Assembly: GCA_002269645.1 (NCBI GenBank)
Contig: NIVC01003374.1
Location: 1-64,000 of the forward strand
Source: Macrostomum lignano
Lineage: Eukaryota
DNA length: 64,000 nt
Direction: 5' to 3'
Below are positions 3,689 to 53,029 of the stretch, one piece after another (position 1 is the stretch's first letter; the number at the start of each line of letters is the position of its first letter). The position numbers and the translations under genes were made by a program. The notes beneath the pieces are model-generated. The model did no database searches and was not told the origin of the DNA. It worked only from the letters and a program-made list of their open reading frames with translations.

Positions 3689-3791
3689 CTGAAAATGATT
3701 TTTTTTTCAGAATAATCAAGTTAACAATACTTCATAAGATTTTAATAAGGCTCTTAGAATCGTATCATTGGCTGAGTAGAAATGAACCCAC

Positions 3792-4263
3792 CTGGATATG
3801 TCAGGGCGTAAACTGAGTTCCTTCCAAAGCCGCCACATATTTGTGAGTGATTTCCTTTGCATGTCGTGTTGCACCGGCTTTCGCTAGCAGCCATTCCGTA
3901 CCGGCCGTAGGAATTCGAACAGAAACAGTGGCAATAGTATTGCAAGCCAAAATACTTGAAGACTCCAAGTGAGCAGATTGCGCTGCACTTCTCGATGGTC
4001 ATGCTTGAACAGTTGTAGGCCGTGCCATAGTATGCGCTCATGGAATGTCCTCCGCTACCGAAGTACGAAACACGGAACAGGCCGTCGAGGTCTCTGGCTC
4101 CATAGGTTCCCGAATCAAGGTAGCATCCTAAATAGCTGAAATTGGCCGGGCGTCCCTCGGCAGCAGGCGGTGACGTCATCAGGACAGCAACGGCGGCAAG
4201 TGACAGAATAGAAGCGAAACACGCTGTACAGGAGTCTCTGATCAGCTTTTTAGTCGTCGGCAT
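3792..4263 (-). CDS. WSC/PAN protein copy 2, exon 1 (signal peptide + WSC domain); 242-aa product
   Basis: ATG at 4263; leader ASILSLAAVAVLMT; YLGCYLD...MTIEKCSAIC...YFGLQY...CFC...C...CGG; donor AG|GTGGGT at 3791; spliced length 729 nt is in frame. Confidence 0.85.
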
Positions 4264-5338
4264 AGCGATGCACGTTTTCAAACGTCAGCTTGGCAATGAG
4301 TTTGGACTTTACCTCAAGAAATTGGATTTTTTTGTCGCTTTTTTATGCTGCTGTACTCGGTGCAGTAGCTCTCTCCAGGAATCATTTTCCTGATTGGCTC
4401 AGATCCAAGGACTTCCAGACAATTCCTTTAACTGCTAGTGGTCGTCGCTTATACGTTAGAGCCTGCAGCTATAGGTGTCAAAGTCTGGCAAAGTCTTTGC
4501 CAAAAGCACAGCAAAGCCATGCATCTTTCTTTCAAAAAGAGACAAACTTGCGCTCTCTCTGATGTTTTCCGCATCGCATTTTCAGTGCGACTTTGAGAAA
4601 CCAAAAAGTATGTATGAAAAAAATTGGCTCATTAGCTAATATTAGATATACTCAGTAGTATGTCTCTCAAGTAGCATAATTGACACAAAATCAAGCAACT
4701 TTTTTGTTTTTATTAAGCTTTGAAATTTGCTTTTGCAGCTTTTTATTAGATGACGGCATAAGTAGCCATGAGAAAAAATTGAATTTGATAGCAATGATGA
4801 GGACGCACTTTTTTCCAAATCCCGCGCTAGCACACGGGCTCTAAATTTACTAGCCTACTAACAGTGGGCGATGGGCATTTTTATCCTTTTTCTGTAAATT
4901 GTCATAGAATCTATACTAGATATAATGTCTGGCCATACTAGTAGTCATAATAACATAGGCATTGCTTTTTGGGTCATAAATCATCGCTTTCGAAGCTGGT
5001 CTGACAGCCACCTGCGCCTCACTCAGTGTTGAGACGGGCGCCAGATGGTCTGAGAGGATGCGGGCGGTAGCTTTTTTCTCATCGTTTTGACAGGCCATCA
5101 AGATTTATGAGGTCAGAGCCTATTGTTCGGATTCACTCAAGCGTGTGACAGCTTTGACAGCTATGCGTTTTACCCCTAAAAGTACTTTGGGATTAGCGAT
5201 TAGCAATTCCTCTTCATTATCTTCACTTTCTATTTAATAAGAGCTTTCTAATGTATATTTTTTCATTAATTTCTGTCAATCCTACGCGAAAAGTCATAAA
5301 TCATTTTGTTGCGATTTTGAGTGATTTATGGCCGCACC

Positions 5339-7872: not shown

Positions 7873-8240
7873 TTAGCTATCGCGGTCTCTTTGTTGCATA
7901 ATCACTTCGTGAGCCAGCTGCACGGCGATGAAGATATCTTTATCGCCTCCTTTGTCTGGGTGATTTTTCAACTGGGCGGCTCTGTAGGCTTCCTGCAGTT
8001 CTTCATCAGAGCAGTACTTGTTCACATTTAATAGCTGGTAAGCAGCTTCAGTAACAATTTCTTCCAACTGAGCCAACTGCTTCATTTTCAGTGCCTCTGA
8101 TTCTGCTTGGTCTTCTTCGAAAAACATGCTCCAAAATTTGTCGCCCAAGTAGTGGTCAGCAAGGACGGAAAAAATAACGATGCCAGCTTCTACGAGTAGC
8201 ACACATGGGCCACCGATCACCATCAAAGCTAGAATCGTTC
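7873..8240 (-). CDS. Chimeric J-domain protein, exon 2 (hydrophobic helix + C-terminal DnaJ domain)
   Basis: Acceptor ttgcag at 8241, phase-1 in-frame join to the 8657 exon; AYQLLNV...EELQEAYRAAQLKNHPDKGGDKDIF with intact HPD. Confidence 0.85.
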
Positions 8241-8656
8241 CTGCAACAATTTCAAAAAAACATTATTGCCAAATTTTAAATAGAATTTTAATCTAACACA
8301 AATTCCCAAAGGAAGCTCAAGAGTACATGTAGCGTCAAACTATAAGAGATATGCTCGATAGTATACTCATGCCCCCAATAAGTTGACCCCGGCTTGTACG
8401 ATTTGCACCCTAAAATACTCCTTCACACTCAGATTAAATGAGACTGAGTCTACATGTCCACATGCCTGACGACTATAGAAAGCCAGACCTGCATGTATGA
8501 GTACGTGTCTGCGTACATAATTGTGTGCTCAGGGTGCAGCCTGCGGAATGAACATAACTACTTATCGCATCACTGACTGTGGCTCGACTGCAGTCTCGCT
8601 AACTAGCCAAACGAGACTAGCCAAACACATCAGTTTTTAAAGCCAGACAGTCTCAC

Positions 8657-11357
8657 CTCCAGTAGTGGCTGCCACAGTGCCGCCGAGTCTGGCCAGTTGC
8701 TTGTTCCTCTCCGCTTTGCTCAGTAGACTGCGACGGTAAGCCATTAGAATTTGATACGCAGAGTAGGTGGTTGTTCCGACAAGCATTGCTGGGCCCAAAA
8801 ATCTTCCGAACCCGGTTAAGGCCTTGCCAATCGTGGTGTAGCCAACGCTTTTGCAGATTTGTCCCAAAACATTAGGGGATGTGACAACAGCTCTGATGAC
8901 GCCGCCTCTGACAGCGCCGAACCCCGCGCTTCTGGCTATCCTGATGGCGCACTCGGAGCTGCTGATCTCCCCCGCGAGGTACCGGCGGACTTCCTCGTCG
9001 CAGGAGATCACGCCGGACAAAACTGCATCTACGAAAGCGCCAATAGCAGCTTCTAGACCAATCTTTTTGATAGCGAAGTCCAGACTCTTGGTTCGGACTG
9101 AAGGATTCCTTAATCTGGCTTCTAGCCAGCTCTTGGCTTTGTTTTCAAGATTGGCAACCTCCTTTTCCAATTGATTTCGCCTGGCTTTTTGCTTTTCAAA
9201 TTCATTGTTTTTTGCTTGAAGATGCCGCGACAGACCCTTTTCAAAAGCCTCCCGTCTCTGCTGCTTGGTAAAGTTACTCTTTAGCTTTTCGATATCACTT
9301 TGCAATTTGGAAATGTCTTTGTTGCACTGGGATAGTTTTTCCCTATCACTGTCTCTTAGGCTATTCATTGTTGACTCCAGTTCCTTGTCCTGAACAGACT
9401 TCTGATGTTCTGCTGAATATTCGTCTTGAGTCCTTAGTTTTTCGCGTTTATTCTTCAACTTTTCAAGACGCTCTTCAGCATTTCTTAGCTCCGTCGGCTT
9501 ATCAATTAGTTCATATATTTTGTCGTCCAGCATCTTTTGGTATTCGGCAATGTTGCCTTCATCCGGAACAAAAACTTGCCGCGCGCTGCCATCATGTTTG
9601 ACGATGGCTTCGTGCTCTTGCAGGGACTTGATTCGAGCCTCGAGTTCAGCAACTTCTTGAATACCTTTTCTGAGCCCGTCGACTTCTTTCTGCAGAGCGT
9701 CAATCTTTTTTATTTCGGCTAACTTCGGTTTTATCTCAGCAAACACTGAGCTCATGGTCTTGTCCTGAAGGAAATCCCGAAATGTTTCCCTGTTCTGATC
9801 GAGGAACGCCCGAATGTTATCAACAGTGTCGGTCTCGATTTCAAAGCCAATCCGGATTCTTGATTCTGCAGCACCTTCAGTGGCATCTGCGATGCCTTTG
9901 GGGCCAATCACGGTCACATTGTCCAGCTGCAGAGCTTCTGGGTAACCTTTAGCTTGTCCAAACTCGCGCTTTGATAGATTGCGGTTCCACTTGGCCCGCC
10001 AGTTGTTGATCGTGTCCACAAGGTTTTCAGGTGTGTCCGTGTACTTGAACTGCACGGCAAAGTACTCGCCAGTGTGGGTGTTTTGAAAGACTGCGTCCGT
10101 GTACTCGGGCGTCTTCAATTCGACATGATTCTTTATGGTGATCTTCCCGTTCCCATCGCCGGCGTGCAGCACTATGGGAGCGCCGCGCCTCTGCACCTCC
10201 GCCATCACCTTCGCTATTTGAAGCTCCTCGAAAGTGATGCCTAGAAGTTCATTCGGATAATAGTTTGGCTTGAGACTTTCTAGACAATTTGGCTTCTTCT
10301 TTAGCATTTCCGTTGCTGCCTTGACACCGCCATTGCGAAGTTCTTTCACAAACTGCGCCCACGGTTCGTCTGTCTCAAGTGAGCGGGTTGCATTTCGAGC
10401 TGCGTTGGATTGATATCCGATGTTTTTAGCGGCCAATTGAGCACCCTCTTTTTCGGACTTTGCCTGCGTGAAGTTTTTGTATGCTTTTTTAAAGTCCTCC
10501 ACCTCCTGTAAGCTTATGTCTTTCAACGCTTGGTCTCTCGATTTAACCCTGCCCGGATCGCACTGAATCCGCAGCTTAATTTTATGAGTAAATGTCGCAT
10601 CGGCTCTCTTGTCACAGGCGCCGCTAAACACAAGATTTACAATTTTCGTCCAAGTTTTCAGCTTGACTTCCTTCGCAACCGAATACTCAATTGTTCCCAT
10701 TGTGGTAGCGGTGAGTTTGCCTTTAGCAATGAACACTGGCAGTTTAAGCTCCCGATCGGTGCCATTTAAACTGTATTTAGCCTTGTAGAGTTCCATGACC
10801 ACCTCACAGCTGACAGACTCTGGTGAGCACAGATGGAGCTTCGCCGAGATCGGTTCAACAGACAAGCTGACTGTTGAGGGCAAACAGTTCAGTTCTGACG
10901 CCTTGCAATCGACAGTAACGGCGTCATTAGTTTGAATCAGTTTAGGAAGCAGTGAGTTCATCGACAGCCTGTCGGAGATCTCTTCGTCAAACTGGAGTCC
11001 AATCTCGGTGAAGTAGCCGCTTATCCAGTAGCGATCCAGCTCTGGAAAGTCGCACAGCCAGTGCCTCATTTTTCCTAGCACGTCAGAATTGTCGCCACCT
11101 TCAAGAACTTCGCAATCGGTATTTCGTAGGCCACTCGAAATCAAAGTAAATTTCTTTTTAGAGTTTTTATCTATCGCTTTCGTTAAAAGCTCACTCGCTT
11201 CTGCAGTTTGAAAGGCGAATTTATCTCTCAGTTCACCCAGTATTTGTTTATGCACCTTCTCAATGTCTCTTTCTGGCAGTCGGCAGGGGACCTCCATTGC
11301 TTTGGCCATTGCCTGCTTGTAGATGTCTAAGCCATTCTCCACCGTTGTTGAAGACAT
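8657..11357 (-). CDS. Chimeric J-domain protein, exon 1 (putative PD-(D/E)xK-like domain, coiled coil, Gly/Ala-rich helices); total 1022 aa
   Basis: 2.7-kb stop-free ORF; donor G|GTGAGA at 8656; 2701+368 = 3069 nt in frame. Preceded by tttcag|acaATG, with a probable 5' UTR exon donor (AAG|GTAATT) near 11753. Confidence 0.85.
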
Positions 11358-11393
11358 TGTCTGAAAGTTTTAGGAGGGTGTAGGTGTCAGTTA

Positions 11394-11712
11394 GGGGGGG
11401 GGGGGTTATGGCCGGTTGGTTAGAGCGTCGGACTCAAGACTGAAAGGTCAGGGGGTTCGATTCTCGACCTACTTGGAATAGTTTGTGCCCTTGAGCAAAA
11501 CACTTTAAAGTAAAGTATATTGCTTCAGTTCACCCAGCTATAAAATGGGTGCCAGCATTAGCTGGGGTAATTGAGAGTGAGTGTGGCCGACCCCCAGTCC
11601 TTGGACTGAACAGCCGTACGCAGCCTTCAGATGCGCCGCGCAATAGCTGCGGCTGAGCTGTCGGTTGCACATCTGGCCCAATTGGGGCATGTGTGATCAA
11701 ATATTAATTATT
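11394..11712 (+). mobile_element. tRNA-derived SINE with CORE-like central domain
   Basis: A-box TGGCCGGTTGG (11409), B-box GGTTCGATTCT (11454), then gtgcccttgagcaaaacactt...cttcagttcacccagctataaaatggg resembling the CORE-SINE domain; AT-rich tail. Confidence 0.75.
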
Positions 11713-15415: not shown

Positions 15416-15483
15416 CTGGCAATCATTTTGGATGTTAAGTTTTTCTTACCTACTGTAAGTAATTTTAGGTTAAACTTTCCTTG

Positions 15484-16598
15484 AATGGCGATTCTTGATG
15501 ATGGTTGATTGAGTGGCGATTCTTGATGATGGTTGATTGAGTGGCGATTCTTGATGATGGTTGGTTGAGTCACTTGAGTGGCGATTCTTGATGATGATTG
15601 ATTGAGTGGCGATTCTTGATGATGGTTGATTGAGTGGCGATTCTTGATGATGATTGATTGAGTGGCGATTCTTGATGATGATTGATTGAGTGGCGATTCT
15701 TGATGATGGTTGATTGAGTGGCGATTCTTGATGATGATTGATTGAGTGGCGATTCTTGATGATGATTGATTGAGTGGCGATTCTTGATGATGGTTGGTTG
15801 AGTGGCGATTCTTGATGATGGTTGGTTGAGTGGCGATTCTTGATGATGGTTGATTGAGTGGCGATTCTTGATGATGGTTGGTTGAGTGGCGATTCTTGAT
15901 GATGGTTGATTGAGTGGCGATTCTTGATGATGATTGATTGAGTGGCGATTCTTGATGATGATTGATTGAGTGGCGATTCTTGATGGTGGTTGATTGAGTG
16001 GCGATTCTTGATGATGGTTGATTGAGTGGCGATTCTTGATGATGATTGATTGAGTGGCGATTCTTGATGATGATTGATTGAGTGGCGATTCTTGATGGTG
16101 GTTGATTGAGTGGCGATTCTTGATGATGGTTGATTGAGTGGCGATTCTTGATGATGGTTGATTGAGTGGCGATTCTTGATGATGATTGATTGAGTGGCGA
16201 TTCTTGATGATGATTGATTGAGTGGCGATTCTTGATGGTGGTTGATTGAGTGGCGATTCTTGATGATGGTTGATTGAGTGGCGATTCTTGATGATGGTTG
16301 ATTGAGTGGCGATTCTTGATGATGATTGATTGAGTGGCGATTCTTGATGATGATTGATTGAGTGGCGATTCTTGATGATGATTGATTGAGTGGCGATTCT
16401 TGATGGTGGTTGATTGAGTGGCGATTCTTGATGATGGTTGATTGAGTGGCGATTCTTGATGATGGTTGATTGAGTGGCGATTCTTGATGATGATTGATTG
16501 AGTGGCGATTCTTGATGATGATTGATTCAGTGGCGATTCTTGATGATGATTGATTCAGTGGCGATTCTTGATGATGGTTGATTGAGTGGCGATTCTCA
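15484..16598. repeat. 28-bp minisatellite filling ANAPC7 intron
   Basis: Unit gagtggcgattcttgatgatggttgatt, about 40 copies. Confidence 0.95.
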
Positions 16599-16621
16599 AC
16601 TATGATTGAATAAACACTCAC

Positions 16622-16934
16622 CCAGCTGTTTAACCAGCAGTTCAGCTTTAGCAATAGCATTCCTATACTTGTGCCGATTAATATAAGTCCACACAATACC
16701 GTGCTGCACTTCAAAGCTGTTAGGCGCCAGCTTCCTGGCCTCGGTGAAGTAGGACAGAGCATCGCGCTCTTTGCCATTTCTAATGCTTACATAACCGCAC
16801 ACGATGAGGGCGTGCACGGAGTTCGGGCTGATGGTCAGGGCTTTCTGGGCGAAGAACATTGCCTTGCTGGACCGTTTGTTGCTGTGGTTCAGGTAGCCAT
16901 AGACTACGTAAGGCTCAGGCCTGTGCTCAGACAC
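16622..16934 (-). CDS. ANAPC7: ANAPC7 internal exon (TPR)
   Basis: Acceptor ctttcag at 16935, donor G|GTGAGT at 16621; SEHRPEPYVVYG...KAMFFAQKALTISPNSVHAL vs APC7 SDQHAEPWVVSG...RALYLGAKAIQLNSNSVQAL. Confidence 0.9.
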
Positions 16935-26360: not shown

Positions 26361-28120
26361 CGAGGGATGTTCCATAAGTACTTATACTTTTGCATGCTGC
26401 TCAGGAACTATGCAACCAATCATTGTAAGTTTTATGTCGCTGGAAAGCGGCTTTACTCATCTTTAATCTGTCGCCAAAATCATTTCGTTCTGTCAACTAT
26501 GTCAAAAGTTACAACAAAAAACGTAGTCAAAGGTCACCCATAGACTTACAAGAAATTTAAAGAGCAACAACTACAATGGCAAGCATGAAAACAGAGGCGC
26601 GTTGTTGATGACAGAAAGTTTGACTTCTTTGTCACTCATCCTCAGTCGGTACCGACACCTTCTCAACGTAGTTTCCACCGGAGTTGATGCACTTGGTCCA
26701 CCTGTTAAACTTTAAACATGCTTTTGATGGCTTCTGCGTACAGCTGTCGGGGGATGACATACAGCAGAATTCTGCGGACTTCCTCCTCGATCTGGTTCCT
26801 GGTCTCGTACACGCGTCCTTTCAGATGGCGCTTCAACTCTGGAAATAAAGCAAAGTCTGCTGGTGCCAGGTCTGGAGAGTAAGGAGGGTGAGGTAGAAGA
26901 TGGAGCTTCAGCTTGCTGATTGCCTCGACTGTCTTTTGTGCTGTATGAGGCCTTGCATTGTCATGATGAAGAATGAAAGGTCTGGGATTTTCACGACGCT
27001 TGTTCTGGATGTCATGATGCAGCTTTGTTAGCGTTTCAACGTAGCGCTCAGAGTTTATTGTAGTGTTTGGCTCCAAAAACTCGACAGTTAGAGGACCATT
27101 GCAGTCGAAAAACAGAGACAGCATGATCTTCTTTCCATGTGCGTCCCTTTGAGCTTTTACCGGAGGATCAGAGCCCTTCAGCATCCAGACCTGGGAATCA
27201 CGTTTCGTTGGTGGATCAAAATGGGGAATCCAGGTTTCATCTCCAGTGACTATCATTCGATGGAAGAGATCCCAACCACCGTATTCTTCCATCATCCAAA
27301 TATTGGCCTGACAAATCTGCTGCCTCTGCAGTCTCAAGTCCGAGGTGAGTAGGCGTGGCACCCAACGAGCAGTCAGCTTGACAAAGTCCATGCGCGACAA
27401 GCAGCGATGCACAGTTGTGCTCGGCGTGTCCAGTCTATCTGCAATCTGTCGAATCGTTAGCCGACAATCTTCGTCCAGCAGATCAAGAATTCGATCGGTG
27501 AGAGCATCAGAGCCTGATGTGCAGGGGCGGCCCGACCTCGGCAAATCAGCAACATTGGTCCTTCCTGCTTCGAACTGCTCAACCCAGTTGTAGACGGTCA
27601 TCCTGCTCACCGCATTAGCTCCATGAATGTTGCATAAATCCGCATAAATCTCTGATCGCTTTTTTCCGAGTTTCCAGAGGGTAAAAATTGCAGCGCGCTG
27701 TCCTTCCCTTGAGTTCACATCCATGGTGATGCAGCAGCAGCCAAGGTGGTGAAACTTTACAAGATTAAGATGCTGTGATCTTAAGATTAAGATGCTGTGA
27801 AAGCTTAGGCCAGTATTTTCCATAGATGAAAAGGGTGTGGCATTCGCTTATGAAGCAAAAAAGAATGCATTATGTAGAATCCGAAATAACTCTGCGTGCT
27901 GAACTTTGAAGTTTTGATTTTGAAAATTTCTTGTAAGTCTATGGGTGACCTTTGACTACGTTTTTGTTGTAACTTTTGACATAGTTGACAGAACGAAATG
28001 ATTTTGGCGACAGATTAAAGATGAGTAAAGCCGCTTTCCAGCGACATAAAACTTACAATGATTGGTTGCGTAGTTCCTGAGCAGCATGCAAAAGTATAAG
28101 TACTTATGGAACATCCCTTG
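26361..28120 (-). mobile_element. Mariner (DD34D) element with about 198-bp TIRs and TA TSD
   Basis: TA|cgagggatgttcc...agaaattt (26361-26558) is inverted to 27924-28120|TA; encloses the transposase ORF. Confidence 0.95.
26705..27724 (-). CDS. Mariner transposase, C-terminally frameshifted
   Basis: Likely start MDVNS at 27724; WVPRLL, VTGDETW, HHDNARPH, YSPDLAPAD with D-34-D spacing; the conserved RWTKC...GNYVEK lies in another frame (stop 26632). Confidence 0.9.
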   Translation of the reverse strand: MDVNSREGQRAAIFTLWKLGKKRSEIYADLCNIHGANAVSRMTVYNWVEQFEAGRTNVADLPRSGRPCTSGSDALTDRILDLLDEDCRLTIRQIADRLDTPSTTVHRCLSRMDFVKLTARWVPRLLTSDLRLQRQQICQANIWMMEEYGGWDLFHRMIVTGDETWIPHFDPPTKRDSQVWMLKGSDPPVKAQRDAHGKKIMLSLFFDCNGPLTVEFLEPNTTINSERYVETLTKLHHDIQNKRRENPRPFILHHDNARPHTAQKTVEAISKLKLHLLPHPPYSPDLAPADFALFPELKRHLKGRVYETRNQIEEEVRRILLYVIPRQLYAEAIKSMFKV

Positions 28121-36258: not shown

Positions 36259-38537
36259 ATGCAGCGAAGCCTTAAACCGCCGCAGGGTCATCAGGCCCAG
36301 CAACAGCAACAATACAATCAGTTTGGCATTGTATATGTGAAGCCATCAACTCGCGAGCATCGCAGCTCAAGCGCCACTGCCATACCCAGCGGTGCCAGTG
36401 GCAAGCATCGTTCCCACTCGGCTATACCACAGCCTCCGCAGCAGCCGCATCATCCAGATCCTTCTTCTTCAACATCAGCAGTAGCAACAGCAGGTACTTT
36501 GCCATTTTCTCCTCGATACGGTCTGCGTTCTCGGCAGCAGCAGCAGCAGCAGCAGCGTTGCCATAGCAACACAGGTAGCAGAAATACCAGCCCGGCGCCG
36601 CCTTTGGCCCCGTCCAGACTGACATCCGGTCGTCACGCTATGCCTACCGGTCACTCAACAGCATCTTCCGGCACTTCATCGTCTGGCATACCAACTAGCA
36701 GCGGCAAGTCAGCCGCTTCGTCGGGAATTCCTCAGCCCCAGGGCAGGCGAGGCTCAGCAGCCGCTGTGGTTGCAGCAACGCCTTCGCCTGGCGCCTCTGC
36801 GCACAGCTCGCTGCCTCAGCCGCAGCGGCATCAACGAGCTCGATCTGAGCAGCCTCCGGCGCAACCGAAGCAGCCAACTGTTCAGTCTACTCAGCTTCCT
36901 AAACCGACTAAATCTGTCCCAAACAGTAGCGGCATCCCAGCGCCATCTGCATCGCCGGCCGCGAAATCCCGTACAGCTTCAAAGAAACCGCCGACGACTC
37001 CGCAGTCTTCTTCTTCGACTAATTCTCAGGCGGCATCCTCGTCAGCGTCCACTGGACGTAGATTGCTGTCCAGGCCAACAATCGGGCAGACAGCTTCACC
37101 TAGATCTGTTACAACGGCATCCCCTGCCTCCGCTACTACTGTTAAGAACTCCAACAATACTAGCAGTAGTAATAGTTTTCTAACTTGCGATGCTTCCGAC
37201 GAGGATAACAGCAATTCCTTGCACATCGACTGCAGCGATCTTGATGATGCTTTAAACAATGCCGACGAGATGTCGATCAGTTCCAGCGAACTGTCGGACG
37301 CTGTTGCTGAGCTGGAACGCTCAGTCTGCGCTGGAGGAGAGGGCCGGGCCACTCCAGACTTGTATGGCCTCACTTTGCGTAAAGCATCGGCAGATTATGG
37401 AGCCATTCGTTCATCCAGTCGGCTTCAGCAACTCCTTCAGGAGGGCTCAGCTGGCGGCGGCAGCGGTGGAGAGTACTACTTCTCCGATACAGAGTCTGTA
37501 CAGCGTCAGCAGCAGCACCAGCTGCTACAGCAGCACCAGAGACGCAAAACCGGCCTGGCTGCTGGCACCAGTGGCTACTGCACCATTCGGTCTGCAGCTG
37601 GTCAAGCCCCCGCCTCTCTGCCAATGTCTGCCGCTGTTCCTCCAACACCTAGTCAGAGCCTTCGACTGCCGTACGCCACCATGCGGTCAAGCTGTTCAAC
37701 TGGGAGCTTCTACCCGGGTAGTGGTGGCGGCGGAGGCATCGGAGGCTCCACGCTGTCAATCTACTCGGCCGTGTCTTCATCAGCCACTACGGCTAATGAG
37801 GAGCGGCAAGCGATGGAGATTGCAAAGCTTCGAGCTGAGCTTGAGCAGGCCCAGCAGAGAATCGCTAGTCTGGCTGGTCAGCTCTGCGCCAACACAGACG
37901 CTGCCGAGGCTTTTGAACAGTCTCTGTCGGATGTCACCACCAAGCTGAGAGATCTGGCTAGCAGTGCTGAACGCAAGGACACTGAGCTGTCCCGTCTCCG
38001 GGCCGCTGTTGGCGCGCTGAAACGCGAGGAAGCGCCAATGCAGCTTATGATGCAGAAGGAGTCGCAGCAGCAAGGCTCGCAAAGTAAACGGCATCATGGC
38101 TGGTTGAGAAGTTTGCGCAGCTCAAAAAAGCAGCAACAACAGCAGCAGCAGCAGCAGTCACAAGCACAGCCTCCTCCTCAGCAACAGCAGCCACCTGTTG
38201 TTGAGCCTCCCGCACTAACAGAGCTCGAACTCCAGCAAAAGCAGCAATCCGCTGCCGAGCTGCAACAATTGCGCAGTCTAACAGAAAAAATGCGAGCAGA
38301 CATTAGCAATTTGAAGGCTGAGAATTGTCGCCTTCAGCAGCTGCAACAGATGAGATCAGATTTTGTAAGCGAGGATCACGGATTTGGCGGGTCGGTTACT
38401 GACGTTTATGGTGGCTTCGGCGGTGGCGCCAGACGGCTGAGCGTGGACTCGACAGCAGCTTTGTCGGCGATCTCTGTCGGCGATGGCTCAATGGATGGTC
38501 GCTGCGATGCCGCCGTAGTGGTTAACGGGGCTCAAGG
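36259..38537 (+). CDS. NAV2: Neuron navigator / unc-53 / sickie-like protein, exon 1 (Ser/Pro/Gln-rich region + coiled coils)
   Basis: EIAKLRAELEQAQQRIASLAGQLCANTDAAEAFEQSL...ERKDTELSRLR matches the NAV coiled coil (EIRKLRRELESSQEKVATLTSQLSAN...AFEQSL); donor GG|GTGAGA at 38538. Symbol denotes the family, not proven orthology. Confidence 0.88.
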
Positions 38538-38559
38538 GTGAGAAAGATTTTAAAGTATA

Positions 38560-38800
38560 GAGACCGGTAGTTTCCATGAGGGGAAATACTTCCGCTGACT
38601 CCTGAGGACATGCAAGCGCGACAATATTATACGCAGGCACGCACTCATACACATGCTCATACAAGGTGTACAATGGCCCTTTGACTTACTAATCGTTAGA
38701 CTTGTACACCCTCTGTGCCTTAGGGGTTAGAGCCGTTCAGGGAGTCGAACCAGGGGCCGTAATGTGATAGTCAGACGTGCTTATCACTGACAGTGTTGCA
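38560..38800 (-). mobile_element. tRNA-derived SINE in the NAV intron
   Basis: Minus strand: A-box-like tcagtgataag, B-box GGTTCGACTCCC (38740-38751); body shares a 26/31-nt core with 8492-8525. Confidence 0.65.
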
Positions 38801-38851
38801 CATTATACTGTAAGCTTCACAAAGTAACTACCCACCCTATTTCCCCCGCAG

Positions 38852-40352
38852 ATTTGACCTAATCGATGGATTTCCAAGCTCAGCGGAAAGTCTCCGACTC
38901 ACTGTGCTGGCTGGGAGCAGCAAGCAGCCAATTGGCTGTCTGCCAGTCTGTCCCAGAACAAAATGGGAAACTTTAGACGCCTGTTGCGGTCGGCTGTTTA
39001 AAGAATATTTGACTAGAGTTGATCCTAGCCAGGGTCTCGGCTTGGGATCGGACTGCGTTGTCGCTTACGAAATCCTTGGGAGCAATGGCGGCAGCAGCGG
39101 CATGGGTCTCAGGCGGCGTGGCGCTTCATCTCACTCTTGCCCGCCGCCTCTGGTAGCTTGCATGTCGGCCGCCTCTGCCGCCTCCTCGGATCCCAATATT
39201 GATCCTAGAAATCCCCAGCTTCGACTTTATCTACAGCTCCATCTGGCTAGCGAGTTGGAGACCCTGGCACTGGAGACTCTGGTGCCTAAGCCCACACTGC
39301 AGAGATATATCGGTCTGCTGAAGGAGCACAGGCGTATTGCGTTGTGCGGCCCAGCAGGTGTTGGCAAGTCCAGACTGGCTGCTAGCCTAGCAGCTCACCT
39401 GTCTGGTTCTTCCTCTAGCGTGGCCACTTTCACCGCCGATCGGCGTAGCGAAAGAAATCTTCGAACTTTTCTCACCAGTTTGAATAACGATTCCAGCGTT
39501 GGTGCAGTTGTGCTGGATAATTTGCACCTGGTAGACTCGCTATCTGAGGTCCTGTCAGCCTGTTTGCCGCCGAAGGAACCGCCGCCGTATTTCATAGTTG
39601 GCGTGATGACGCAAGGCGGCAGCGGGCAAGCTGAGCGACTTCACGCGGCCAAGCTTGAGCTGCACAGCGCTTGCAATTTTCGCTGGGTTCTGTGCTCGGC
39701 TCATATGGAACCGGTGCGCGGCTTTCTGGGCCGGTGTCTGCGCCAGCGTCTGGTTGCTGCCGAAGTTGAAGCTGGGTCCAGACTGCCCGAGATGTCGCTG
39801 ATAGTTGACTGGCTGCAGGACGCCTGGTTGAAGTTAAATCGCCTGTTGGAGACACACGCTGGCGCTGAGGCGTCGCTGGGCCCCGGCCAGTTCGCCGCCT
39901 GCCCCATGGACTCGTGGCGCGGCGCGGAGCAGTGGTTCCTGCGGCTGTGGAATCACTGCTTAGTGCCCTACGTTATCGAAGCTTGCCGTGAAGGCCTGCG
40001 TCTGCGCGGCGCCAGAGCTCCGTGGGAAGATCCGGCGGCCAAGTTGAAGATTGACTGGCCCTGGGGTGCCAGCGGGGACGCCGAGGAGTTGATCAGCATC
40101 CGTCCGGAGGATGTGGGTTACGAAGCTAGTAGACCTCCAGCCGCAGGGGTTTCCGCACCAGCCGTTGCCACCGGAGCTGCTGATGACATCCCAGCCGAAG
40201 TTGTCAATAAAGATTCTACAGTATCTAACGACGAGGTGATTCCAGCATCGTCTGATGCCAACACCACAGATGACCGACTGATGGCTATGCTCATGCGGCT
40301 ACAGGAGGTTGCTAACTGTGGTTTGGCTAGTGACCTGACAGACTGTGTCTGA
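38852..40352 (+). CDS. NAV2: Neuron navigator-like protein, exon 2 (AAA+ ATPase); total 1259 aa
   Basis: Acceptor ttcccccgcag at 38851, phase-2 join; ETLVPKPTLQRYIGLLKEHRRIALCGPAGVGKS (Walker A); 2279+1501 = 3780 nt in frame. Confidence 0.92.
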
Positions 40353-40439: not shown

Positions 40440-41065
40440 ATCCACGATAATCTCCCTTCAACCCACTAGAATCTCCCTTATAAATCTATCAGAATCTTGC
40501 TTAAATCCACGAGAATCTTCCTTAAAATCCATGAGAATCTCTCTTAACTCCACAAGAATCTCCCTTCAATCCACGAGAATTTCCCTTGAATCCACGAGAG
40601 TCTCCCTTGAATCCACGAGAATCTCCCTTCAATCCACGATAATCTCCCTTCAACCCACTAGAATCTCCCTTAAATCTATCAGAATCTCGCTTCAATCCAC
40701 GAGAATCTCCCTTCAATCCGCTAGGATCTCCCTTTAATCCACGAGAATCTCGCCTAAATCCACGAGAATCTCCCTTCAATCCACGAGAATCTCGCCTAAA
40801 TCCACGAGAATCTCCCTTCAATCCGCGAGAATCTCCCTTCAATCCACGAGAATCTCGCCTAAATCCACGAGAATCTCCCTTCAATCCGCGAGAATCTCCC
40901 TTCAATCCACGAGAACCTCCCTTCAATCCACGAGAATCTCCCTTCAATCCACGAGAATCTCCCTTCGATCCTCGAGAATCTCCCTTCAATCCACGAGAAT
41001 CTCCCTTCAATTCACGAGAGTCTCCCTTCAATCCACGAGAATCTCCTTTAAATCCACGAGAATCT
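40440..41065. repeat. 21-bp minisatellite just downstream of the NAV stop
   Basis: Unit aatccacgagaatctcccttc, about 29 copies. Confidence 0.95.
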
Positions 41066-42379
41066 TCTAAAATTTTACGTGAAGCTCTCTAAACCGTACA
41101 AGAATATTCGAAAAGTCTGAGAAGCCTTCTCGAATTCATAGAATCGTCTTTGAGCTGTCTGTTATATTCAGAAGCATGGCAGTACTTGTCAACTAGTTTT
41201 CATCTGGAGCAATATTTTCAAAACATGGCTTACTTTGAAGAGTTTATATATTGTTTATTACGATAGATTTGGCAGAAATCTGACGTATTGCAATCTTCAT
41301 GTATATGCGTTGCTAATAAAATTAAAAGCAATACATTTTCTCATTAATTAGATCACTGTATTATTTAATGTATTTAATATATTATATATATTATCTTATT
41401 GCATTACAATATTTGCAAAAAAGCCTGCATTATATACAAGTATTTTTTAGCGTAATCAAATCAAAACTTTACCTAAAATTGATACTTTCAATAATTTGTG
41501 CAGTTTTTATCAATTATATTATATAGTGTCTTCTGCCCAGTCAGACGTGTTGGTTGGTTAAGAAAGAAAGAAAAACAGTTTGATACAGTTTGTTTAAATG
41601 CGATCAAGTCTTCAGCTGTTCGCCTTTCAACCGCTTGCTTTTATCTCCGTATTTTACCATTTTTTATTTGCTCATCATCTCTCATTACTTCCATCCAGCT
41701 TAGCTGCATAGCATTGGCTTCCACAAAGGTTCTTTTCTACTAATGTATAATCACAAAATTATTTGAGCAATAAATCCAATTCGATTATTTTTATCAGTTA
41801 TAAATGCTTGCGCTTGCTGCAAATAGTTTTTATTGTGTTTTAAAATCCTTCGTGCCGCCGGAGTCTCTTAGTACAGACTAATCTCTTGTGAAGTTTTTTT
41901 ACCTTGTTGCTTTTTTGTAAATCGAATTCGCTTAGCCGTTTTAGTCACCTTAGTATGAAAAAACCGTTTATTTTGTCATTTTTTGCAACCGATGTCTAGT
42001 GTAAATAATACAGAAAAGTCTCGGTTGTTGAACTTTTCTCAAAGTACAATTTCACTAGCAATGCTACGTGCTTTTTTGTTTTTTTGTGTCTGTGAATGAA
42101 ACTATTTATATTGTTTTTTTAGCTTGGTAACTATTATTTACTTGGTATTGATATTTAGAATTCTTGGCATTGAGAAAATATTTATTGGCTTTATTATCGA
42201 ATATAGACTAAGCAAAAGTTCTTTATTAGTTATCAAATAATTATTCACGAATATATTTCGTCAGAAGTAGAACTTTTTGTTTCAGTATCCACACACACCC
42301 AATGGACACTCAGAAATGGCTTTCACAAACCTATACTACGAATGTACATTCACTCTTAGCCAACCCCTAACCTTTATTG

Positions 42380-43230
42380 TATACTCGCTCTTCACAGACA
42401 TTAACCCCCAGTGTACGCTCCTATTCATCAAACTCTAACCCCCAATGTACACTCGCTCTTCACCAACCTCTTACCCCCAATGTACACTCGCTATTCGTCA
42501 ACCTCTTACCCCCAATGTACACTCGCTCTTCACCAACATCTTACCCCCAATGTACACTCGCTCTTCGCCAACCTCTTACCCCCAATGTACACTCGCTCTT
42601 CGCCAACCTCTTACCCCCAATGTACACTCGCTCTTCGCCAACCTCTTACCCCCAATGTACACTCGCTCTTCGCCAACCTCTTACCCCCAATGTACACTCG
42701 CTCTTCGCCAACCTCTTACCCCCAATGTACACTCGCTCTTCACCAACCTCTTACCCCCAATGTACACTCACTCTTCGCCAACCTCTTACCCCCAATGTAC
42801 ACTCGCTCTTCACCAACCTCTTACCCCCAATGTACACTCGCTCTTCACCAACCTCTTACCCCCAATGTACACTCGCTCTTCACCAACCTCTTACCCCCAA
42901 TGTACACTCGCTCTTCACCAACCTCTTACCCCCAATGTACACTCGCTCTTCACCAACCTCTTACCCCCAATGTACACTCGCTCTTCGCCAACCTCTTACC
43001 CCCAATGTACACTCGCTCTTCGCCAACCTCTTACCCCCAATGTACACTCGCTCTTCACCAACCTCTTACCCCCAATGTACACTCGCTCTTCACCAACCTC
43101 TTACCCCCAATGTACACTCGCTCTTCACCAACCTCTTACCCCCAATGTACACTCGCTCTTCGCCAACCTCTTACCCCCAATGTACACTCGCTCTTCGCCA
43201 ACCTCTTACCCCAAAGCTACACTCATTCTT
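42380..43230. repeat. 35-bp minisatellite
   Basis: Unit ccaacctcttacccccaatgtacactcgctcttc(a/g), about 23 copies. Confidence 0.95.
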
Positions 43231-44389
43231 AAGTTATTTAAACCTTAGGGCTTATCATTTCGCAATAGTTAACAGCCAGTAAATAAGCAAGGTATACATT
43301 TCACAAACTTTTCACCTAGTATACCATTACAATGTACGTACAGATTTATCTGTTTTAGTAAAGTATCATATTTTATACTTAACTTGTGTGAAATTTCTGT
43401 CGATAAAATTAATAATCTTATCCTATACATGATTAATTTGTCATTAATTTCGCCACCCAGTCCACAATCAGGTTGTTTCAAATTTAGTCGAATTATTAAT
43501 GCAAACTAGTTTTTCGCGTTTATCGTGTTATTGTGTACTTGAGCTGAAATAGAAGCCTTTGCTTTGCATTACATAATAATATTGACTTTGTCAGTGATGT
43601 TAGAGAATTCCCATTCGTTGTGGCAGTAGTACACTCAGCCTGTGTGCACCCTGGCGCACTTTAAGCGACATTGTCACACAACCGGCGAGAGGCATTTAAT
43701 GGTAGCCAATAGTGTGACTGCACTTGGAATCGAGCCTGGGCCGCTGAAACATCACTAAGGCTGCCCCCCCCCTTTAGGCAGTCTGTGGGAGTGCAGCTTG
43801 GAAGTTCAACCTGTCCGTTTGGTTGGCTATATTGTTTATGGCCAATTCCAGTTCTGTGGCAGTGGCTGCTTGCTGCAGCTAATGCAGATTCTCCTAATTG
43901 TCAAATTCACTGATAAAAGCAATTTATAAACTTTCGGACATTTCTCCTGAGCGCCTATTGTTTGTTACAATGATTTCACTGTTCCCTAAATAACTGTACC
44001 AATGCTTTATTAAACAAGCTTTAAAAGCTTTCTTTTATCACAATTTTCTAACCCAATTTTTGTGAGAAGAATTTTTTTTCGCATTACCAAATATTTGATT
44101 ATATTTGTTTATTAAAGTAAATTGATCAGCTTTAATGTGCAACTGCTTTTTTGCCATATCTGAGTTCCATTATGGTTTTTTCCGATTTTTTTGAGTTTTT
44201 TTTTTAGAATATGAAGCATTAGGACGTTATTAACTAGCCATTTAGAAAATTAGTTTCCCAGGGATCTTAAGCCTTCTAGGGATTGCTAGCAATTAATAAA
44301 AAATTTTAAGCCTTTTTGTAGTTGCACTTGTTGACAAATAGCTTTTTTGTGACGCTGTAGAATTCAGTCTGTGGTTGTTGGAACTGACA

Positions 44390-45620
44390 AGGGGCGGAGC
44401 GTTATATTAAGGGGGCGGATGGTTAAAGGAAGGGGGTGGATGGTTTAAATCGAGGGGCGGATTGTTATAGGGAGGGAAGGATTGTTATAGCGTGGGGCGG
44501 ATGTTTAAATAGAGGGGCGGAAAGTTTAATAGAGGGGCGGAAAGTTTAATAGAGGGGGCGGATGGTTTAATAGAGGGGCGGATAGTTATAGGGAGAAGGC
44601 AGATGGTAAATACTGGGGGCGGATGGTTAAATAGAGGGGCGGATGATAAATAGAGGGGACGGATGGTAAATAGAGGGGGCGGATGGTAAATAGAGGGGGC
44701 GGATGGTAAATAGAGGGGGCGGATGGTAAATAGAGGGGCGGATGATAAATAGAGGGGGCGGATGGTAAATAGAGGGGGCGGATGGTAAATAGAGGGGGCG
44801 GATGGTAAATAGAGGGGGCGGATGGTAAATAGAGGGGGCGGATGGTAAATAGAGGGGGCGGATGGTAAATAGAGGGGGCGGATGGTTAAATAGAGGGGCG
44901 GATGATAAATAGAGGGGGCGGATGGTAAATAGAGGGGGCGGATGGTAAATAGAGGGGGCGGATGGTTTAATAGAGGAGGCGGATGGTAAATAGAGGGGGC
45001 GGATGGTAAATAGAGGGGGCGGATGGTTTAATAGAGGGGCGGATGGTTTAATAGAGGAGGCGGATGGTTTAATAGAGGGGCGGATGGTTTAATAGAGGGG
45101 GCGGATGGTTTAATAGAGGAGCAGATGGTTAAACAGAGTGGGCAGATGGTTAAACAGAGTGGGCAGATGGTTAAACAGAGTGGGCGGATGGTTAAACAGA
45201 GTGGGCGGATGGTTAAACAGAGTGGGCAGATGGTTAAACAGAGTGGGCGGATGGTTAAACAGAGTGGGCAGATGGTTAAACAGAGTGGGCAGATGGTTAA
45301 ACAGAGTGGGCAGATGGTTAAACAGAGTGGGCGGATGGTTAAACAGAGTGGGCAGATGGTTAAACAGAGTGGGCGGATGGTTAAACAGAGTGGGCAGATG
45401 GTTAAACAGAGTGGGCAGATGGTTAAACAGAGTGGGCAGATGGTTAAACAGAGTGGGCGGATGGTTAAACAGAGTGGGCGGATGGTTAAACAGAGTGGGC
45501 AGATGGTTAAACAGAGTGGGCGGATAGTTAAACAGAGTGGGCGGATGGTTAAACAGAGTGGGCGGATGGTTAAACAGAGTGGGTGGATGGTTAAACAGAG
45601 TGGGCAGATGGTTAAATAGA
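44390..45620. repeat. G-rich 20-bp then 21-bp minisatellite
   Basis: ggatggtaaatagagggggc to about 45110, then gatggttaaacagagtgggc(a/g). Confidence 0.95.
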
Positions 45621-46215
45621 GCGCGAATGGTCTAAGTGAGGGGCGGATATTTAACAGAATGAGACTGAGAATGGTGTACGGCGCAAGGCCGTTAATGAAA
45701 TCGAAGCAGATGGATGGCTTTGTGTGGCTCTGTGAGTTCAATTGGATCCAATTGTAAGATTTTCTATAGGCTCTCTTTACTTTAAGCGGTTATCTTCACA
45801 GGTATTAAGAACAAAATCACTCAGCTAGTTGCCTTCGTGTTGTCATTAGATTTCTATTGTCTATAAAATAGTCTAAACTGGCTTTGCCTATTCATTTTTT
45901 AATGGCAAAAGCGTATGAGGGGTTAATTTTGCGGCTATCCTCTGCTACTGCAAGAAACCGGGGACGGACGGCTTTGGAGTGGAGAACTCTGTAGGGGATA
46001 ATGGCGAGGGGAGTCTGGGCTGGAGGGGGTGTTGAGAGGCTGAGAAGGGAGTCGCCTCTTCTCTCCTCCCGTATTTGCATTCCTCCCCTCTTTTTTTCTT
46101 CCTAATCTGCAGCTTTCTGCGTACAGTCAGTCAGAGTCTGAGAGAGATCTGCTGTAGCGCCCACTTCTATCTGTCTTTCCGCGCTCCTGCTGCCCCTTTT
46201 TGGTCGGGCTTAATT

Positions 46216-50866: not shown

Positions 50867-51544
50867 ATGGCTGACACAGCTAAAGCCGCTAACAACAACT
50901 CAAGCTCCAAGCCGACTCAAGCCAATAATAATGGTGATGTGAACCAGAGCAGCACAGACCCCAGCGCCAAGACTCAGCAGGCTCAGTCCCAGCGTCAGGG
51001 AACGCGGGTGTTTAAAAAGAGTTCTCCAAATGGCAAAATCACCGCCTACCTCGGCAAGAGAGACTTTGTGGACCATCTGACTCACGTGGACCCCATTGAC
51101 GGCGTGGTCCTGGTCGACCCCGACTACATGAAGGACCGCAAGGTGTACGCCCACGTGCTAGCCGCCTTCCGTTACGGCCGCGAAGATCTGGACGTTCTTG
51201 GTCTGACATTTCGCAAGGACTTGTACATCGCCTGCATGCAAGTTTATCCACCAATTAAGGACAATGCTAAGCCGTTGACTCGACTGCAGGAGCGCCTCAT
51301 CAAGAAGCTGGGCGATAATGCGCATCCGTTCTTCTTTGAGCTGCCTCCTCAGCAGAGTCCAGCTTCTGTCACCCTGCAGCCGGGGCCCAATGACAGCGGC
51401 AAACCTTGCGGAGTTGACTACGAGCTCAAGACCTACGTAGCTGAGACTGCCGACGGGAAGTCGCATAAACGTAGCACCGTCAGGCTGGCTATTAGGAAAC
51501 TCACCTATGCACCCGAGCAGCCGGGCCCGCAGCCCAGCGCTGAG
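50867..51544 (+). CDS. ARRB1: Beta-arrestin (kurtz-like), exon 1
   Basis: [38 protein letters not shown]...[19 protein letters not shown]; donor GAG|GTGATT at 51545. Symbol denotes the family. Confidence 0.95.
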
Positions 51545-51679
51545 GTGATTCGCTTGTTTGGGCTTCATCCATTCGGAGGGTGGCGAAAGGTTCAATAATG
51601 AAGTGTCATGGAGACTAACGGATGCATCAGTGGTGGTAGCAGTGGCATCAATGTTAACTTCGGTTATCAAAAGATCCTG

Positions 51680-52520
51680 AAGGTTTATGGAGGGTAACTG
51701 TTGACATCAAAAGATCCTGAAGCTTCAGGAAAGGTAGAGACGACATCAAAGGATTCTGAGCTTCGGGGAGATTAGGGATACTGCGACATCAAAGGATCCT
51801 GAAGCTTCAGGGATGGTAGGGCAGTACGACATCAAAGGATCCTGAAACTTCAGGGAGGGTAGGGACGACATCAAAAGATCCTGAAGCTTCAGGGGAGGTA
51901 GGAACGACATCAAAAGATCATTAAGCTTCAGGGGAGGTAGGAACGACATCAAAAGATCATTAAGCTTCAGTGGAGGTAGGAACGACATCAAAAGATCATG
52001 AAGCTTCAGAGGAGGTAGGAACGACATCAAAAGATCATTAAGCTTCAGGGAAGGTAGGGACGACATCAAAAGAGCATTAGCTTCATAGAAGGTAGGGACG
52101 ACATCAAAAGATCCTAAAGCTTCAGGGAAGGTAGGAACGACATCAAAAGATCATGAAGCTTCAGAGGAGGTAGGAACGACATCAAAAGATCATTAAGCTT
52201 CAGGGAAGGTAGGGACGACATCAAAAGATCATTAGCTTCATAGAAGGTAGGGACGACATCAAAAGATCCTAAAGCTTCAGGGAAGGTAGGAACGACATCA
52301 AAAGATCCTGAAGCTTCAGAGGAGGTAGGAACGACATCAAAAGATTATGAAGCTTCAGGGAAGGTAGAAACGACATCAAAAGCTGATGAAGCTTCAGGGA
52401 GAGTAGCGGCGATATCCAAGGATCCTGAAACTTTAGAGAGTGTGGGGTGATATCAAAGGATCTCAAAGTTTCAGGGAGGGTAGCGGTGAGATCAAAGGAT
52501 CCAGAAGATACATGGAGGGT
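51680..52520. repeat. 39-bp minisatellite in arrestin intron 1
   Basis: Unit ggtaggaacgacatcaaaagatcattaagcttcagggga, about 20 degenerate copies. Confidence 0.9.
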
Positions 52521-52567
52521 AGGAGACATCCTGACGGCTCATAAAGTGTCCCTTCCCTAACCCGCAG

Positions 52568-52996
52568 ACCACAAAGGAGTTCATCATGAGCGCTGGCTGT
52601 CTCAGACTGGAAGCCAGTCTTGACAAGGAGAAATATTACCACGGCGAATCGATCGCTATCAACGTCCTGGTTGACAACAACACCAGCAAAACTGTGAAGA
52701 AAGTTCGAATCTCAGTTCGTCAAATTGCCGATATTTGCCTATTCAGTCCGAATAGTTACAAGTGCGGAGTGGCCGAACTGGAATCTGAAGAAGGCTTCCC
52801 TATTGGGCCTTCGCAGACTGGCTGGTGCAAGGTGTACCACGTGTGCCCCCTGCTGGCTAACAATCGGGACAAGCGTGGCCTGGCTTTGGACGGTCAGCTG
52901 AAACACGAGGACACCAACTTGGCTAGCAGTACCATACTGAAGGATGCCAGCCAGTCTAAGGAGAATTTGGGCATTGTGGTCAACTATAGAGTCAAG
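52568..52996 (+). CDS. ARRB1: Beta-arrestin, exon 2
   Basis: Acceptor cccgcag at 52567; [16 protein letters not shown]...[20 protein letters not shown]; donor AAG|GTTGGT at 52997. Confidence 0.93.
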
Positions 52997-53029
52997 GTTG
53001 GTTTCGATGCTATTGTACCATTTTTGAGA

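Follow-up and report, generated by a model that had tools for sequence, protein, structure and literature searches.

What does an animal protein do that carries a nuclease-like domain, Gly-rich hydrophobic helices and a C-terminal J-domain in a single chain, and where did it come from? The question is raised by a gene on the minus strand (positions 7873 to 11357) of a 64,000-nucleotide (nt) stretch of the genome of the flatworm Macrostomum lignano (assembly GCA_002269645.1, contig NIVC01003374.1, positions 1 to 64,000), hereafter the window. Its product of 1022 amino acids (aa) may be a membrane-tethered, Hsp70-coupled nuclease that represents, within known folds, a new family with a new architecture. 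We give this reading a probability of roughly 45%, judged from a predicted structure and from sequence comparison.

Gene model and domain organization

The gene model is real and its product is an already annotated, uncharacterised protein. The largest open reading frame (ORF) of the window, of 906 aa (8637..11357, minus strand), is followed by a frame of 117 aa (7873..8226). A splice donor (...actggag/GTgaga) places the last base of exon 1 at 8657 and an acceptor (...ttgttgcAG/gaacg) the first base of exon 2 at 8240. Splicing 11357-8657 to 8240-7873 gives 3069 nt in frame, that is 1022 codons and a stop, with an AATAAA at 7873-7868 overlapping the stop codon. The gene is built as follows:

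8657..11357, minus strand: coding exon 1, aa 1-900 and base 1 of codon 901, with the ATG at 11357-11355 (ORF list, splice reconstruction, identity to PAA47020.1)
8241..8656, minus strand: intron of 416 nt, GT..AG, phase 1 within codon G901
7873..8240, minus strand: coding exon 2, remainder of codon 901 to aa 1022, with the stop at 7875-7873

From end to end the spliced product is identical (100%) to M. lignano PAA47020.1 (UniRef A0A267DEL5), a protein that is encoded on three contigs of the duplicated M. lignano genome and whose public labels, “hypothetical protein BOX15_Mlig024987g1” and “J domain-containing protein” in UniRef, carry no function. The exon join is further backed by the intronless orthologues of Lottia gigantea and Dendronephthya gigantea, in which the equivalent region is one continuous reading frame, and by the orthologue of Gymnothorax javanicus, where the homologous codon is interrupted by a phase-1 intron. 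The two exons proposed in the original prediction, which was made from the DNA sequence alone, do therefore join into a single chimeric protein of 1022 aa.

Three observations concern the edges of this model. An AG acceptor lies at 11361-11362, 3 nt 5' of the ATG (ttcAG/acaATG), with no exon identified upstream of it; it could serve spliced-leader trans-splicing or end an intron in the 5' untranslated region. Spliced-leader trans-splicing is common in M. lignano (PMC8629364). Just 5' of the start codon, at 11400-11560, is a stretch resembling a tRNA or a short interspersed element (minus strand ...ggtcgagaatcgaaccccctgaccttt...gacgctctaaccaaccggccataacc, then a C-run), in which ARAGORN detected no tRNA. 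An alternative M. lignano model, UniRef A0A1I8J0I6 (P0003, 912 aa), starts at M97 and leaves out the 13 residues YLAGEISSSECAI (aa 789-801, window 9000-9038). Because these residues hold a G-E-I-S/T motif that is kept in all orthologues, the alternative model is, from the alignment, probably wrong at this place.

The protein can be divided into the following regions, all on the minus strand:

10368..11357: N-terminal family-specific module, aa 1-330, conserved in at least 13 relatives
9744..10367: predicted restriction-endonuclease-like (PD-(D/E)xK-fold) domain, aa 331-538 (AlphaFold2 and Foldseek neighbours)
10041..10232: putative active-site stretch within it, aa 376-439, FEE...YTDAVFQNTHTGEYFAVQFKY (invariant columns of a 21-sequence alignment and a motif scan of relatives)
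9123..9743: charged helical coiled-coil-like linker, aa 539-745 (composition, heptad scan against shuffles)
8657..9122: Gly/Ala/Ser-rich hydrophobic-helix domain, part 1, aa 746-900 (alignment, hydropathy, internal repeat, small-xxx-small enrichment)
8107..8240: Gly-rich domain, part 2, aa 901-945 (alignment, hydropathy)
7876..8058: C-terminal minimal J-domain, aa 962-1022, helices I-III, with the His-Pro-Asp (HPD) motif at nt 7954-7962 (Pfam PF00226)

The J-domain was the sole match above a Pfam threshold (PF00226, aa 967-1020, 37 bits against a cut-off of 27.8, E 3.8e-9), and the predicted HPD motif was found intact at aa 994-996, HPDK being invariant in 11 orthologues. J-domains in the PDB matched the C-terminus at E values of 2e-4 and weaker, TIM14 among them (E 0.019). 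The domain is of the minimal class-C kind because the protein ends only 26 residues past the HPD; no G/F (Gly/Phe-rich) or zinc-finger region and no other DnaJ-related Pfam match was present. By its sequence the protein is thus a class-C (type III) J-domain protein.

When the rest of the protein was scanned region by region no Pfam match was obtained even at E<=10. Pfam therefore has no model for three conserved regions, namely the module at the N-terminus, the divergent nuclease-fold domain and the Gly-rich domain with its repeats. The first of these consists of about three helices, a beta-rich part at aa ~140-280 with the motifs PIxxxLxxHNPxxV and WxKxxSLGINxxFD, and a further helix. It is missing from some members or isoforms, for example Clytia isoform X2. 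A profile of 13 such modules matched nothing among PDB sequences or in Pfam, and the resemblance to GBP/atlastin helical bundles that had been suggested for this part found no support, with no GBP or atlastin match in PDB sequences at E<=10 and none in Pfam. The sole model covering the module, an AlphaFold2 run on aa 1-535 with a 2-sequence alignment, was of low confidence (predicted local distance difference test, pLDDT, 37).

The nuclease-like domain

We aligned aa 331-538 with the corresponding domain of 21 homologues that share 23-48% identity with the window protein. Nine columns were invariant: F376, E377, G400, D401, G402, G404, D421, Q436 and K438. The constellation E...D-x14-QxK that had been picked out in the original prediction was therefore upheld across the family, in the window protein as D421-x14-Q436-x-K438 and with a spacing of 12-15 among homologues. 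A GDGxG loop (G400-D401-G402-x-G404) is invariant in addition to it. The sequence E413-x-K415 after D401, which resembles a canonical D...ExK, was rejected as a catalytic motif as it is not conserved in homologues.

AlphaFold2 with the 21-homologue alignment gave a model of aa 331-538 with a pLDDT of 92.3 and a predicted template modelling (TM) score of 0.88. In the model a helix (369-391) bearing E377 is followed by a strand (395-399), the GDGxG loop, a hairpin (405-408 and 412-415), two strands (422-426 and 432-437), helices at 443-471 (the first at 443-461) and a last strand (482-484). D421 stands just before strand 422-426 while Q436 lies within strand 432-437, with K438 directly after it. 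This alpha-beta-beta-beta-alpha-beta order is that of the restriction-endonuclease fold with one inserted hairpin. A Foldseek search of the PDB with the model returned PD-(D/E)xK-fold nucleases at all ranks from 1 to 36, including PfoI, EcoO109I, Can2, Card1, BbvCI, CidB nuclease domains, AddB, BamHI and PaqCI as well as tRNA-splicing endonuclease, R2 endonuclease, MunI, NucS and the arenavirus L endonuclease. Against the predicted viral structures of BFVD the best E value was 2e-3, and many of the named matches were again of the PD-(D/E)xK type (an Mrr-domain protein, RecB/Cas4, YqaJ and proteins named “PD-(D/E)XK”). In sequence-profile searches, matches to HslU (E 0.04-0.07) covered a short non-core stretch only and were set aside as chance.

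Because the Foldseek lists are consistent and agree with the topology and the invariant residues, all three taken together, we regard a restriction-endonuclease-like fold as having good support that falls short of proof. The nuclease-type fold of the original prediction is in this way supported by a confident model, its core order and nearly all-PD-(D/E)xK neighbours, though each single match is weak. In the model E377, the two Asp residues and the Gln-x-Lys would sit on the helix and strands where PD-(D/E)xK enzymes hold their metal-binding and catalytic residues.

Comparison with known nucleases and J-domain proteins

A more specific assignment to the Mrr-type nucleases did not survive. There was no Pfam match to Mrr_cat (PF04471) at E<=10 for the window protein, and Mrr_cat_2 was seen in a single one of the 21 homologues, at E 0.17. 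Using hhalign we compared the domain with single EcoKMrr and with a 79-member alignment of EcoKMrr-type catalytic domains taken from genome contigs; 13 columns of the Gly loop were aligned, with a probability of 0.35%. What the two share is the order of motifs, FE...GDG...D...QxK here and FE...GDGGIDG...QAK in Mrr, and a viral Mrr-domain protein at rank 4 of the BFVD structural neighbours (probability 0.80). They differ in that the Asp pairing with QxK stands here 20 residues past the GDG loop and not inside it. The winged-helix DNA-binding domain of the Mrr N-terminus is also absent, no such Pfam domain being found in the protein or in 13 N-terminal modules. The bacterial membrane protein YeeR, named in the original prediction as a look-alike, fared no better, with a best BLASTP E value of 0.69 and an hhalign probability of 0.2% against its C-terminus. 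By eye YeeR has G-x-G-H-G...D...IQTKY, which probably prompted that comparison, and no method backed homology.

With PD-(D/E)xK nucleases such as PfoI, EcoO109I, Can2/Card1, NucS and the AddB nuclease domain, the window protein shares the predicted core, with a Glu on helix 1, an Asp at a strand start and (Q)xK on the next strand. It departs from them by the extra invariant GDGxG loop and beta-hairpin between the first strand and the Asp strand, by a Gln in place of Asp/Glu in the xK motif, and by the lack of detectable sequence-profile similarity to the described families. It is moreover an animal protein, in which the domain is flanked by a novel N-terminal module on one side and by coiled coil, membrane helices and J-domain on the other.

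The C-terminal end invites comparison with Pam18/TIM14, DNAJC19 and bacterial DjlA, which likewise have a hydrophobic or Gly-rich membrane segment beside a minimal J-domain (helices I-III, HPDKGG) and no G/F region or zinc finger. Those are proteins of ~100-270 aa with no enzyme domain, whereas here the J-domain closes a multidomain protein of 1022 aa. Sacsin is a large eukaryotic protein with a J-domain and a HEPN nuclease-like domain, and so offers an analogy for a J-domain and a nuclease-type fold in one large protein. The analogy goes no further, since HEPN is not a PD-(D/E)xK fold and sacsin has neither membrane helices nor any sequence relationship to the window protein.

This resemblance to membrane-anchored J-proteins suggests that the protein could be a housekeeping, organelle-anchored J-protein (compare Pam18/DNAJC19, DjlA and Sec63) whose non-catalytic nuclease fold serves as a binding platform, for example by tethering RNA or nucleoids to a membrane. 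A transmembrane-like segment directly before a minimal C-terminal J-domain with HPDKGG is indeed the arrangement of membrane-anchored class-C J-proteins, the TIM14 match fits with it, and inactive PD-(D/E)xK domains are common. Such a factor would not, however, be missing from most animal genomes, and our searches found 35 clusters in all; that all five catalytic-type residues are invariant would also be unusual for a decayed active site. We find this reading improbable.

Linker and Gly-rich hydrophobic helices

Between the nuclease-like domain and the Gly-rich region is a linker (aa 539-745) made up to 49% of K/E/R/D/Q and shorter in most orthologues. A crude heptad scan gave scores beyond the 95th percentile of shuffled sequences almost throughout aa 532-747, so that the coiled coil expected here is retained as a charged coiled-coil-like linker.

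The region that follows (aa 746-945) contains 30% Gly/Ala/Ser, against a comparison value of 18%, and has 13 small-xxx-small-xxx-small motifs in its 200 aa as compared with 9 in the other 745 aa; 7 orthologues are similarly enriched. Its first part has a moderately hydrophobic helix at aa ~765-785 and the first copy of a repeated motif, Y-x-x-G-E-I-(S/T)-x-x-E. Hydrophobicity peaks in the second part, at aa 903-929 (nt 8155-8235, Kyte-Doolittle 2.34), and this segment is followed by the family motif (G/A)D(H/Y)(F/Y)LGDKFW. The two halves of the domain align around Y-x-x-G-E-I-T-x-x-E (hhalign of halves of the family alignment, E 1.7e-4, probability 50%), and from this repeat the domain (window 8107-9122) looks like an internal duplication. 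An 11-sequence profile of the domain matched no described family, Gly-zipper or pore-former in Pfam or among PDB sequences. Of the glycine-zipper-like helices proposed earlier, then, the repeated (G/A/S)xxx(G/A/S) pattern on hydrophobic helices stands, while a link to a described Gly-zipper or pore-former family does not.

These helices also allow for an effector that acts cell-autonomously in immunity or cell death. In such a protein the N-terminal module would sense a trigger, the coiled coil would oligomerise and the Gly-rich helices would permeabilise a membrane in the manner of colicins, Bcl-2 or APOL proteins, where amphipathic helices shield a hydrophobic hairpin. The nuclease-fold domain would act as a second effector or as a ligand sensor, and Hsp70 recruited by the J-domain would hold a latent soluble state. 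Consistent with this, the Gly-rich domain appears as repeated amphipathic helices that lead into one very hydrophobic segment, ~27-35 residues long and containing a GGP turn. In its architecture the protein is reminiscent of defence effectors of prokaryotes in which a PD-(D/E)xK nuclease is combined with a sensor, and Can2, Card1 and HamA are among the structural neighbours. The patchy taxonomy, the mostly intron-poor genes and the several M. lignano copies would fit as well. We nevertheless consider the effector unlikely: no homology to known pore-formers or defence proteins was found in Pfam, PDB sequences or PADLOC, and the strict conservation of nuclease-type residues suits an enzyme more than a sensor. 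The animal toxin or immune effector raised in the original prediction is a speculation.

Family distribution and origin

An exhaustive HMMER search with a profile that combined aa 1-535 and one relative, run against 1.84 billion representative proteins at E<=0.001, found 35 relatives. Each of those that we read was either a complete protein of 900-1000 aa, its domains in the same order, or a fragment of such a protein. The five members with organism names are all from animals: the mollusc Lottia gigantea, the moray eel Gymnothorax javanicus (on a 152-Mb chromosome scaffold), the soft coral Dendronephthya gigantea, the hydrozoan Clytia hemisphaerica and M. lignano itself. As read from these sequences the order of the domains has been kept between cnidarians and a vertebrate, and the distribution among named members is sparse (two cnidarians, one mollusc, one flatworm and one eel). 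We found no paper that mentions the accessions of the family, whose members are labelled “hypothetical” or “J domain-containing”; both family and architecture appear to be undescribed, in agreement with the earlier failure to recognise a named gene. Word-indexed protein searches with the full-length or N-terminal sequence had returned only the protein itself and one relative, candidates having probably been swamped by coiled-coil and J-domain words.

Gene structures vary among the relatives. The coding region is essentially one exon in Lottia and Dendronephthya, in Clytia and in a contig of GCA_013332895.1 a single intron separates the N-terminal module from the nuclease-like domain, and in contigs of GCA_041443065.1 and GCA_025491035.1 the J-domain lies in a separate downstream ORF. 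The eel gene has one GT..AG intron of 164 nt (L085 5405-5568), of phase 1 and in codon S802, which shares its alignment column with flatworm G901; the introns of both species are thus of phase 1. The GC content of the window gene is like that of its neighbours. The intronless Dendronephthya orthologue (L086 1-6880) is on the opposite strand within the span of a large immunoglobulin (Ig)-domain (I-set) gene, presumably in an intron. One relative of 853 aa (P0002), first read as intron read-through, proved to be truncated by an assembly artefact, its metagenome contig ending in a fold-back (L001 2740-2919; the last ~110 nt are a reverse complement); its 938-aa cluster mate P0005 has the J-domain.

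Since the position and phase of the intron are common to flatworm and eel, the GC content is like that of the neighbours and no bacterial-looking relative was found among the HMMER matches examined, a long residence in animal genomes is indicated and a recent transfer from bacteria is disfavoured. Such a transfer, of an Mrr- or YeeR-like membrane nuclease into the flatworm, had been suggested by the intronless 2.7-kb exon 1 and by the Mrr-like D...QxK motif, to which the viral Mrr-domain protein at BFVD rank 4 may be added. Yet every relative examined has the eukaryote-type modules of this family, nothing matched in Pfam, NCBIfam, PADLOC or PHROGs, the hhalign probabilities for Mrr and YeeR are the negligible ones given above, and orthologues occur in cnidarians, a mollusc and a fish, the latter sharing an intron position. 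We regard this origin as essentially excluded.

The patchy distribution and the intron-poor structure remain odd and lead to a further possibility, that the gene came from giant viruses (Nucleocytoviricota), or passed between them and animals, and was kept only sporadically in animal genomes, either as a domesticated viral gene or as a host gene captured by viruses. Among the BFVD structures the domain as a whole is best matched by a “J domain-containing protein” of 1002 aa from Bodo saltans virus (A0A2H4UU33; probability 0.99, TM score 0.50, all 208 columns), which is near-equal in length and has the same annotated domain, the comparison being one of nuclease-like domain structure and annotation only. 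Proteins of Orpheovirus, Harvfovirus, Terrestrivirus and Pandoravirus are on the same list, and the patchy spread and single-exon coding in Lottia and Dendronephthya, the latter inside an Ig-domain gene, would also fit. On the other hand, the Bodo saltans virus protein has 11% identity in the structural alignment and was not recovered by exhaustive HMMER, so that the likeness is one of predicted structures. Scans of viral contigs and of Joint Genome Institute (JGI) metagenome contigs contained no relatives, and the intron shared by flatworm and eel together with the neighbour-like GC content speaks for long residence in animals. A viral origin is in our view doubtful; it would concern the history of the gene and not its mechanism, and is compatible with the other readings.

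Other features of the window

Four further coding features were noted in the window, as well as several repeats:

3754-4281, minus strand: ORF whose start resembles a signal peptide, with a WSC carbohydrate-binding domain (PF01822, E 4.9e-15)
26705-27823, minus strand: intact ORF of 372 aa for a mariner/Mos1-type transposase (Transposase_1, DDE_3, HTH_48) in AT-rich surroundings
36259-40352, plus strand: neuron-navigator-like gene, in which a Q/S-rich low-complexity ORF (36259-38541, GC 0.55) comes first and a second ORF has a NAV1 ubiquitin-like domain, an AAA+ domain and the NAV1 lid (PF25408, E 2.5e-33)
50867-53086, plus strand: exons for arrestin N- and C-domains (PF00339, E 1.8e-24; PF02752, E 4.6e-15)
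15470-16777, 40522-41031, 42377-43282 and 45028-45741: long tandem repeats that give spurious ORFs in several frames and fall together with regions where GC skew is extreme, at 14-18 kb and 42-46 kb

Proposed function

How could the parts of the protein work together? In the membrane-tethered, Hsp70-coupled nuclease that we favour, the N-terminal 900 residues would be cytosolic because there is no signal peptide, and the coiled coil would bring about dimers or oligomers. The Gly/Ala-rich helices, chiefly aa 903-929, would lie in or on an organelle or the plasma membrane, and near that membrane the nuclease-fold domain would carry out metal-dependent cleavage of DNA or RNA. The J-domain would load Hsp70 locally, whereby the hydrophobic helices could be kept soluble, their insertion driven or the oligomer taken apart. 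The family-specific N-terminal module, which some isoforms are without, would be a regulatory or target-recognition part. J-domain proteins confer specificity on Hsp70, and we know of no J-protein that pairs a restriction-endonuclease-fold domain having its catalytic-type residues intact with membrane helices; our own searches found no other J-protein with a nuclease-fold domain beside such helices.

Several points weigh against this proposal. Every Foldseek match in the PDB was weak and none was significant (best E 0.045, probability <=0.44, TM score <=0.31), and no sequence-profile method tied the nuclease-like domain to any known nuclease family in PDB sequences, Pfam, NCBIfam, PADLOC or PHROGs. 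The placement of the residues on the fold was judged from the order of elements in the model, and their convergence on one site is putative. PD-(D/E)xK-fold domains are often non-catalytic binders, and only one segment reaches the hydrophobicity of a classical transmembrane helix.

We may further speculate that the family is ancient in animals and possibly common to them and giant viruses, and that its PD-(D/E)xK nuclease, latent membrane-inserting helices and J-domain make up a chaperone-gated, cell-autonomous defence or cell-death effector, following a logic like that of Can2, Card1 and Cap4 and built independently in eukaryotes. We think it rather improbable that all of this holds.

From an evolutionary point of view, a possible giant-virus counterpart together with a sparse distribution in animals makes the family a puzzle. 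RNA interference and transgenesis are routine in M. lignano, and this tractability makes the function of the gene directly testable. If the nuclease is active, the protein would represent a new coupling of nucleic-acid cleavage to membrane and chaperone control in animals, and it could plausibly act in defence against viruses or transposons or in regulated cell death.

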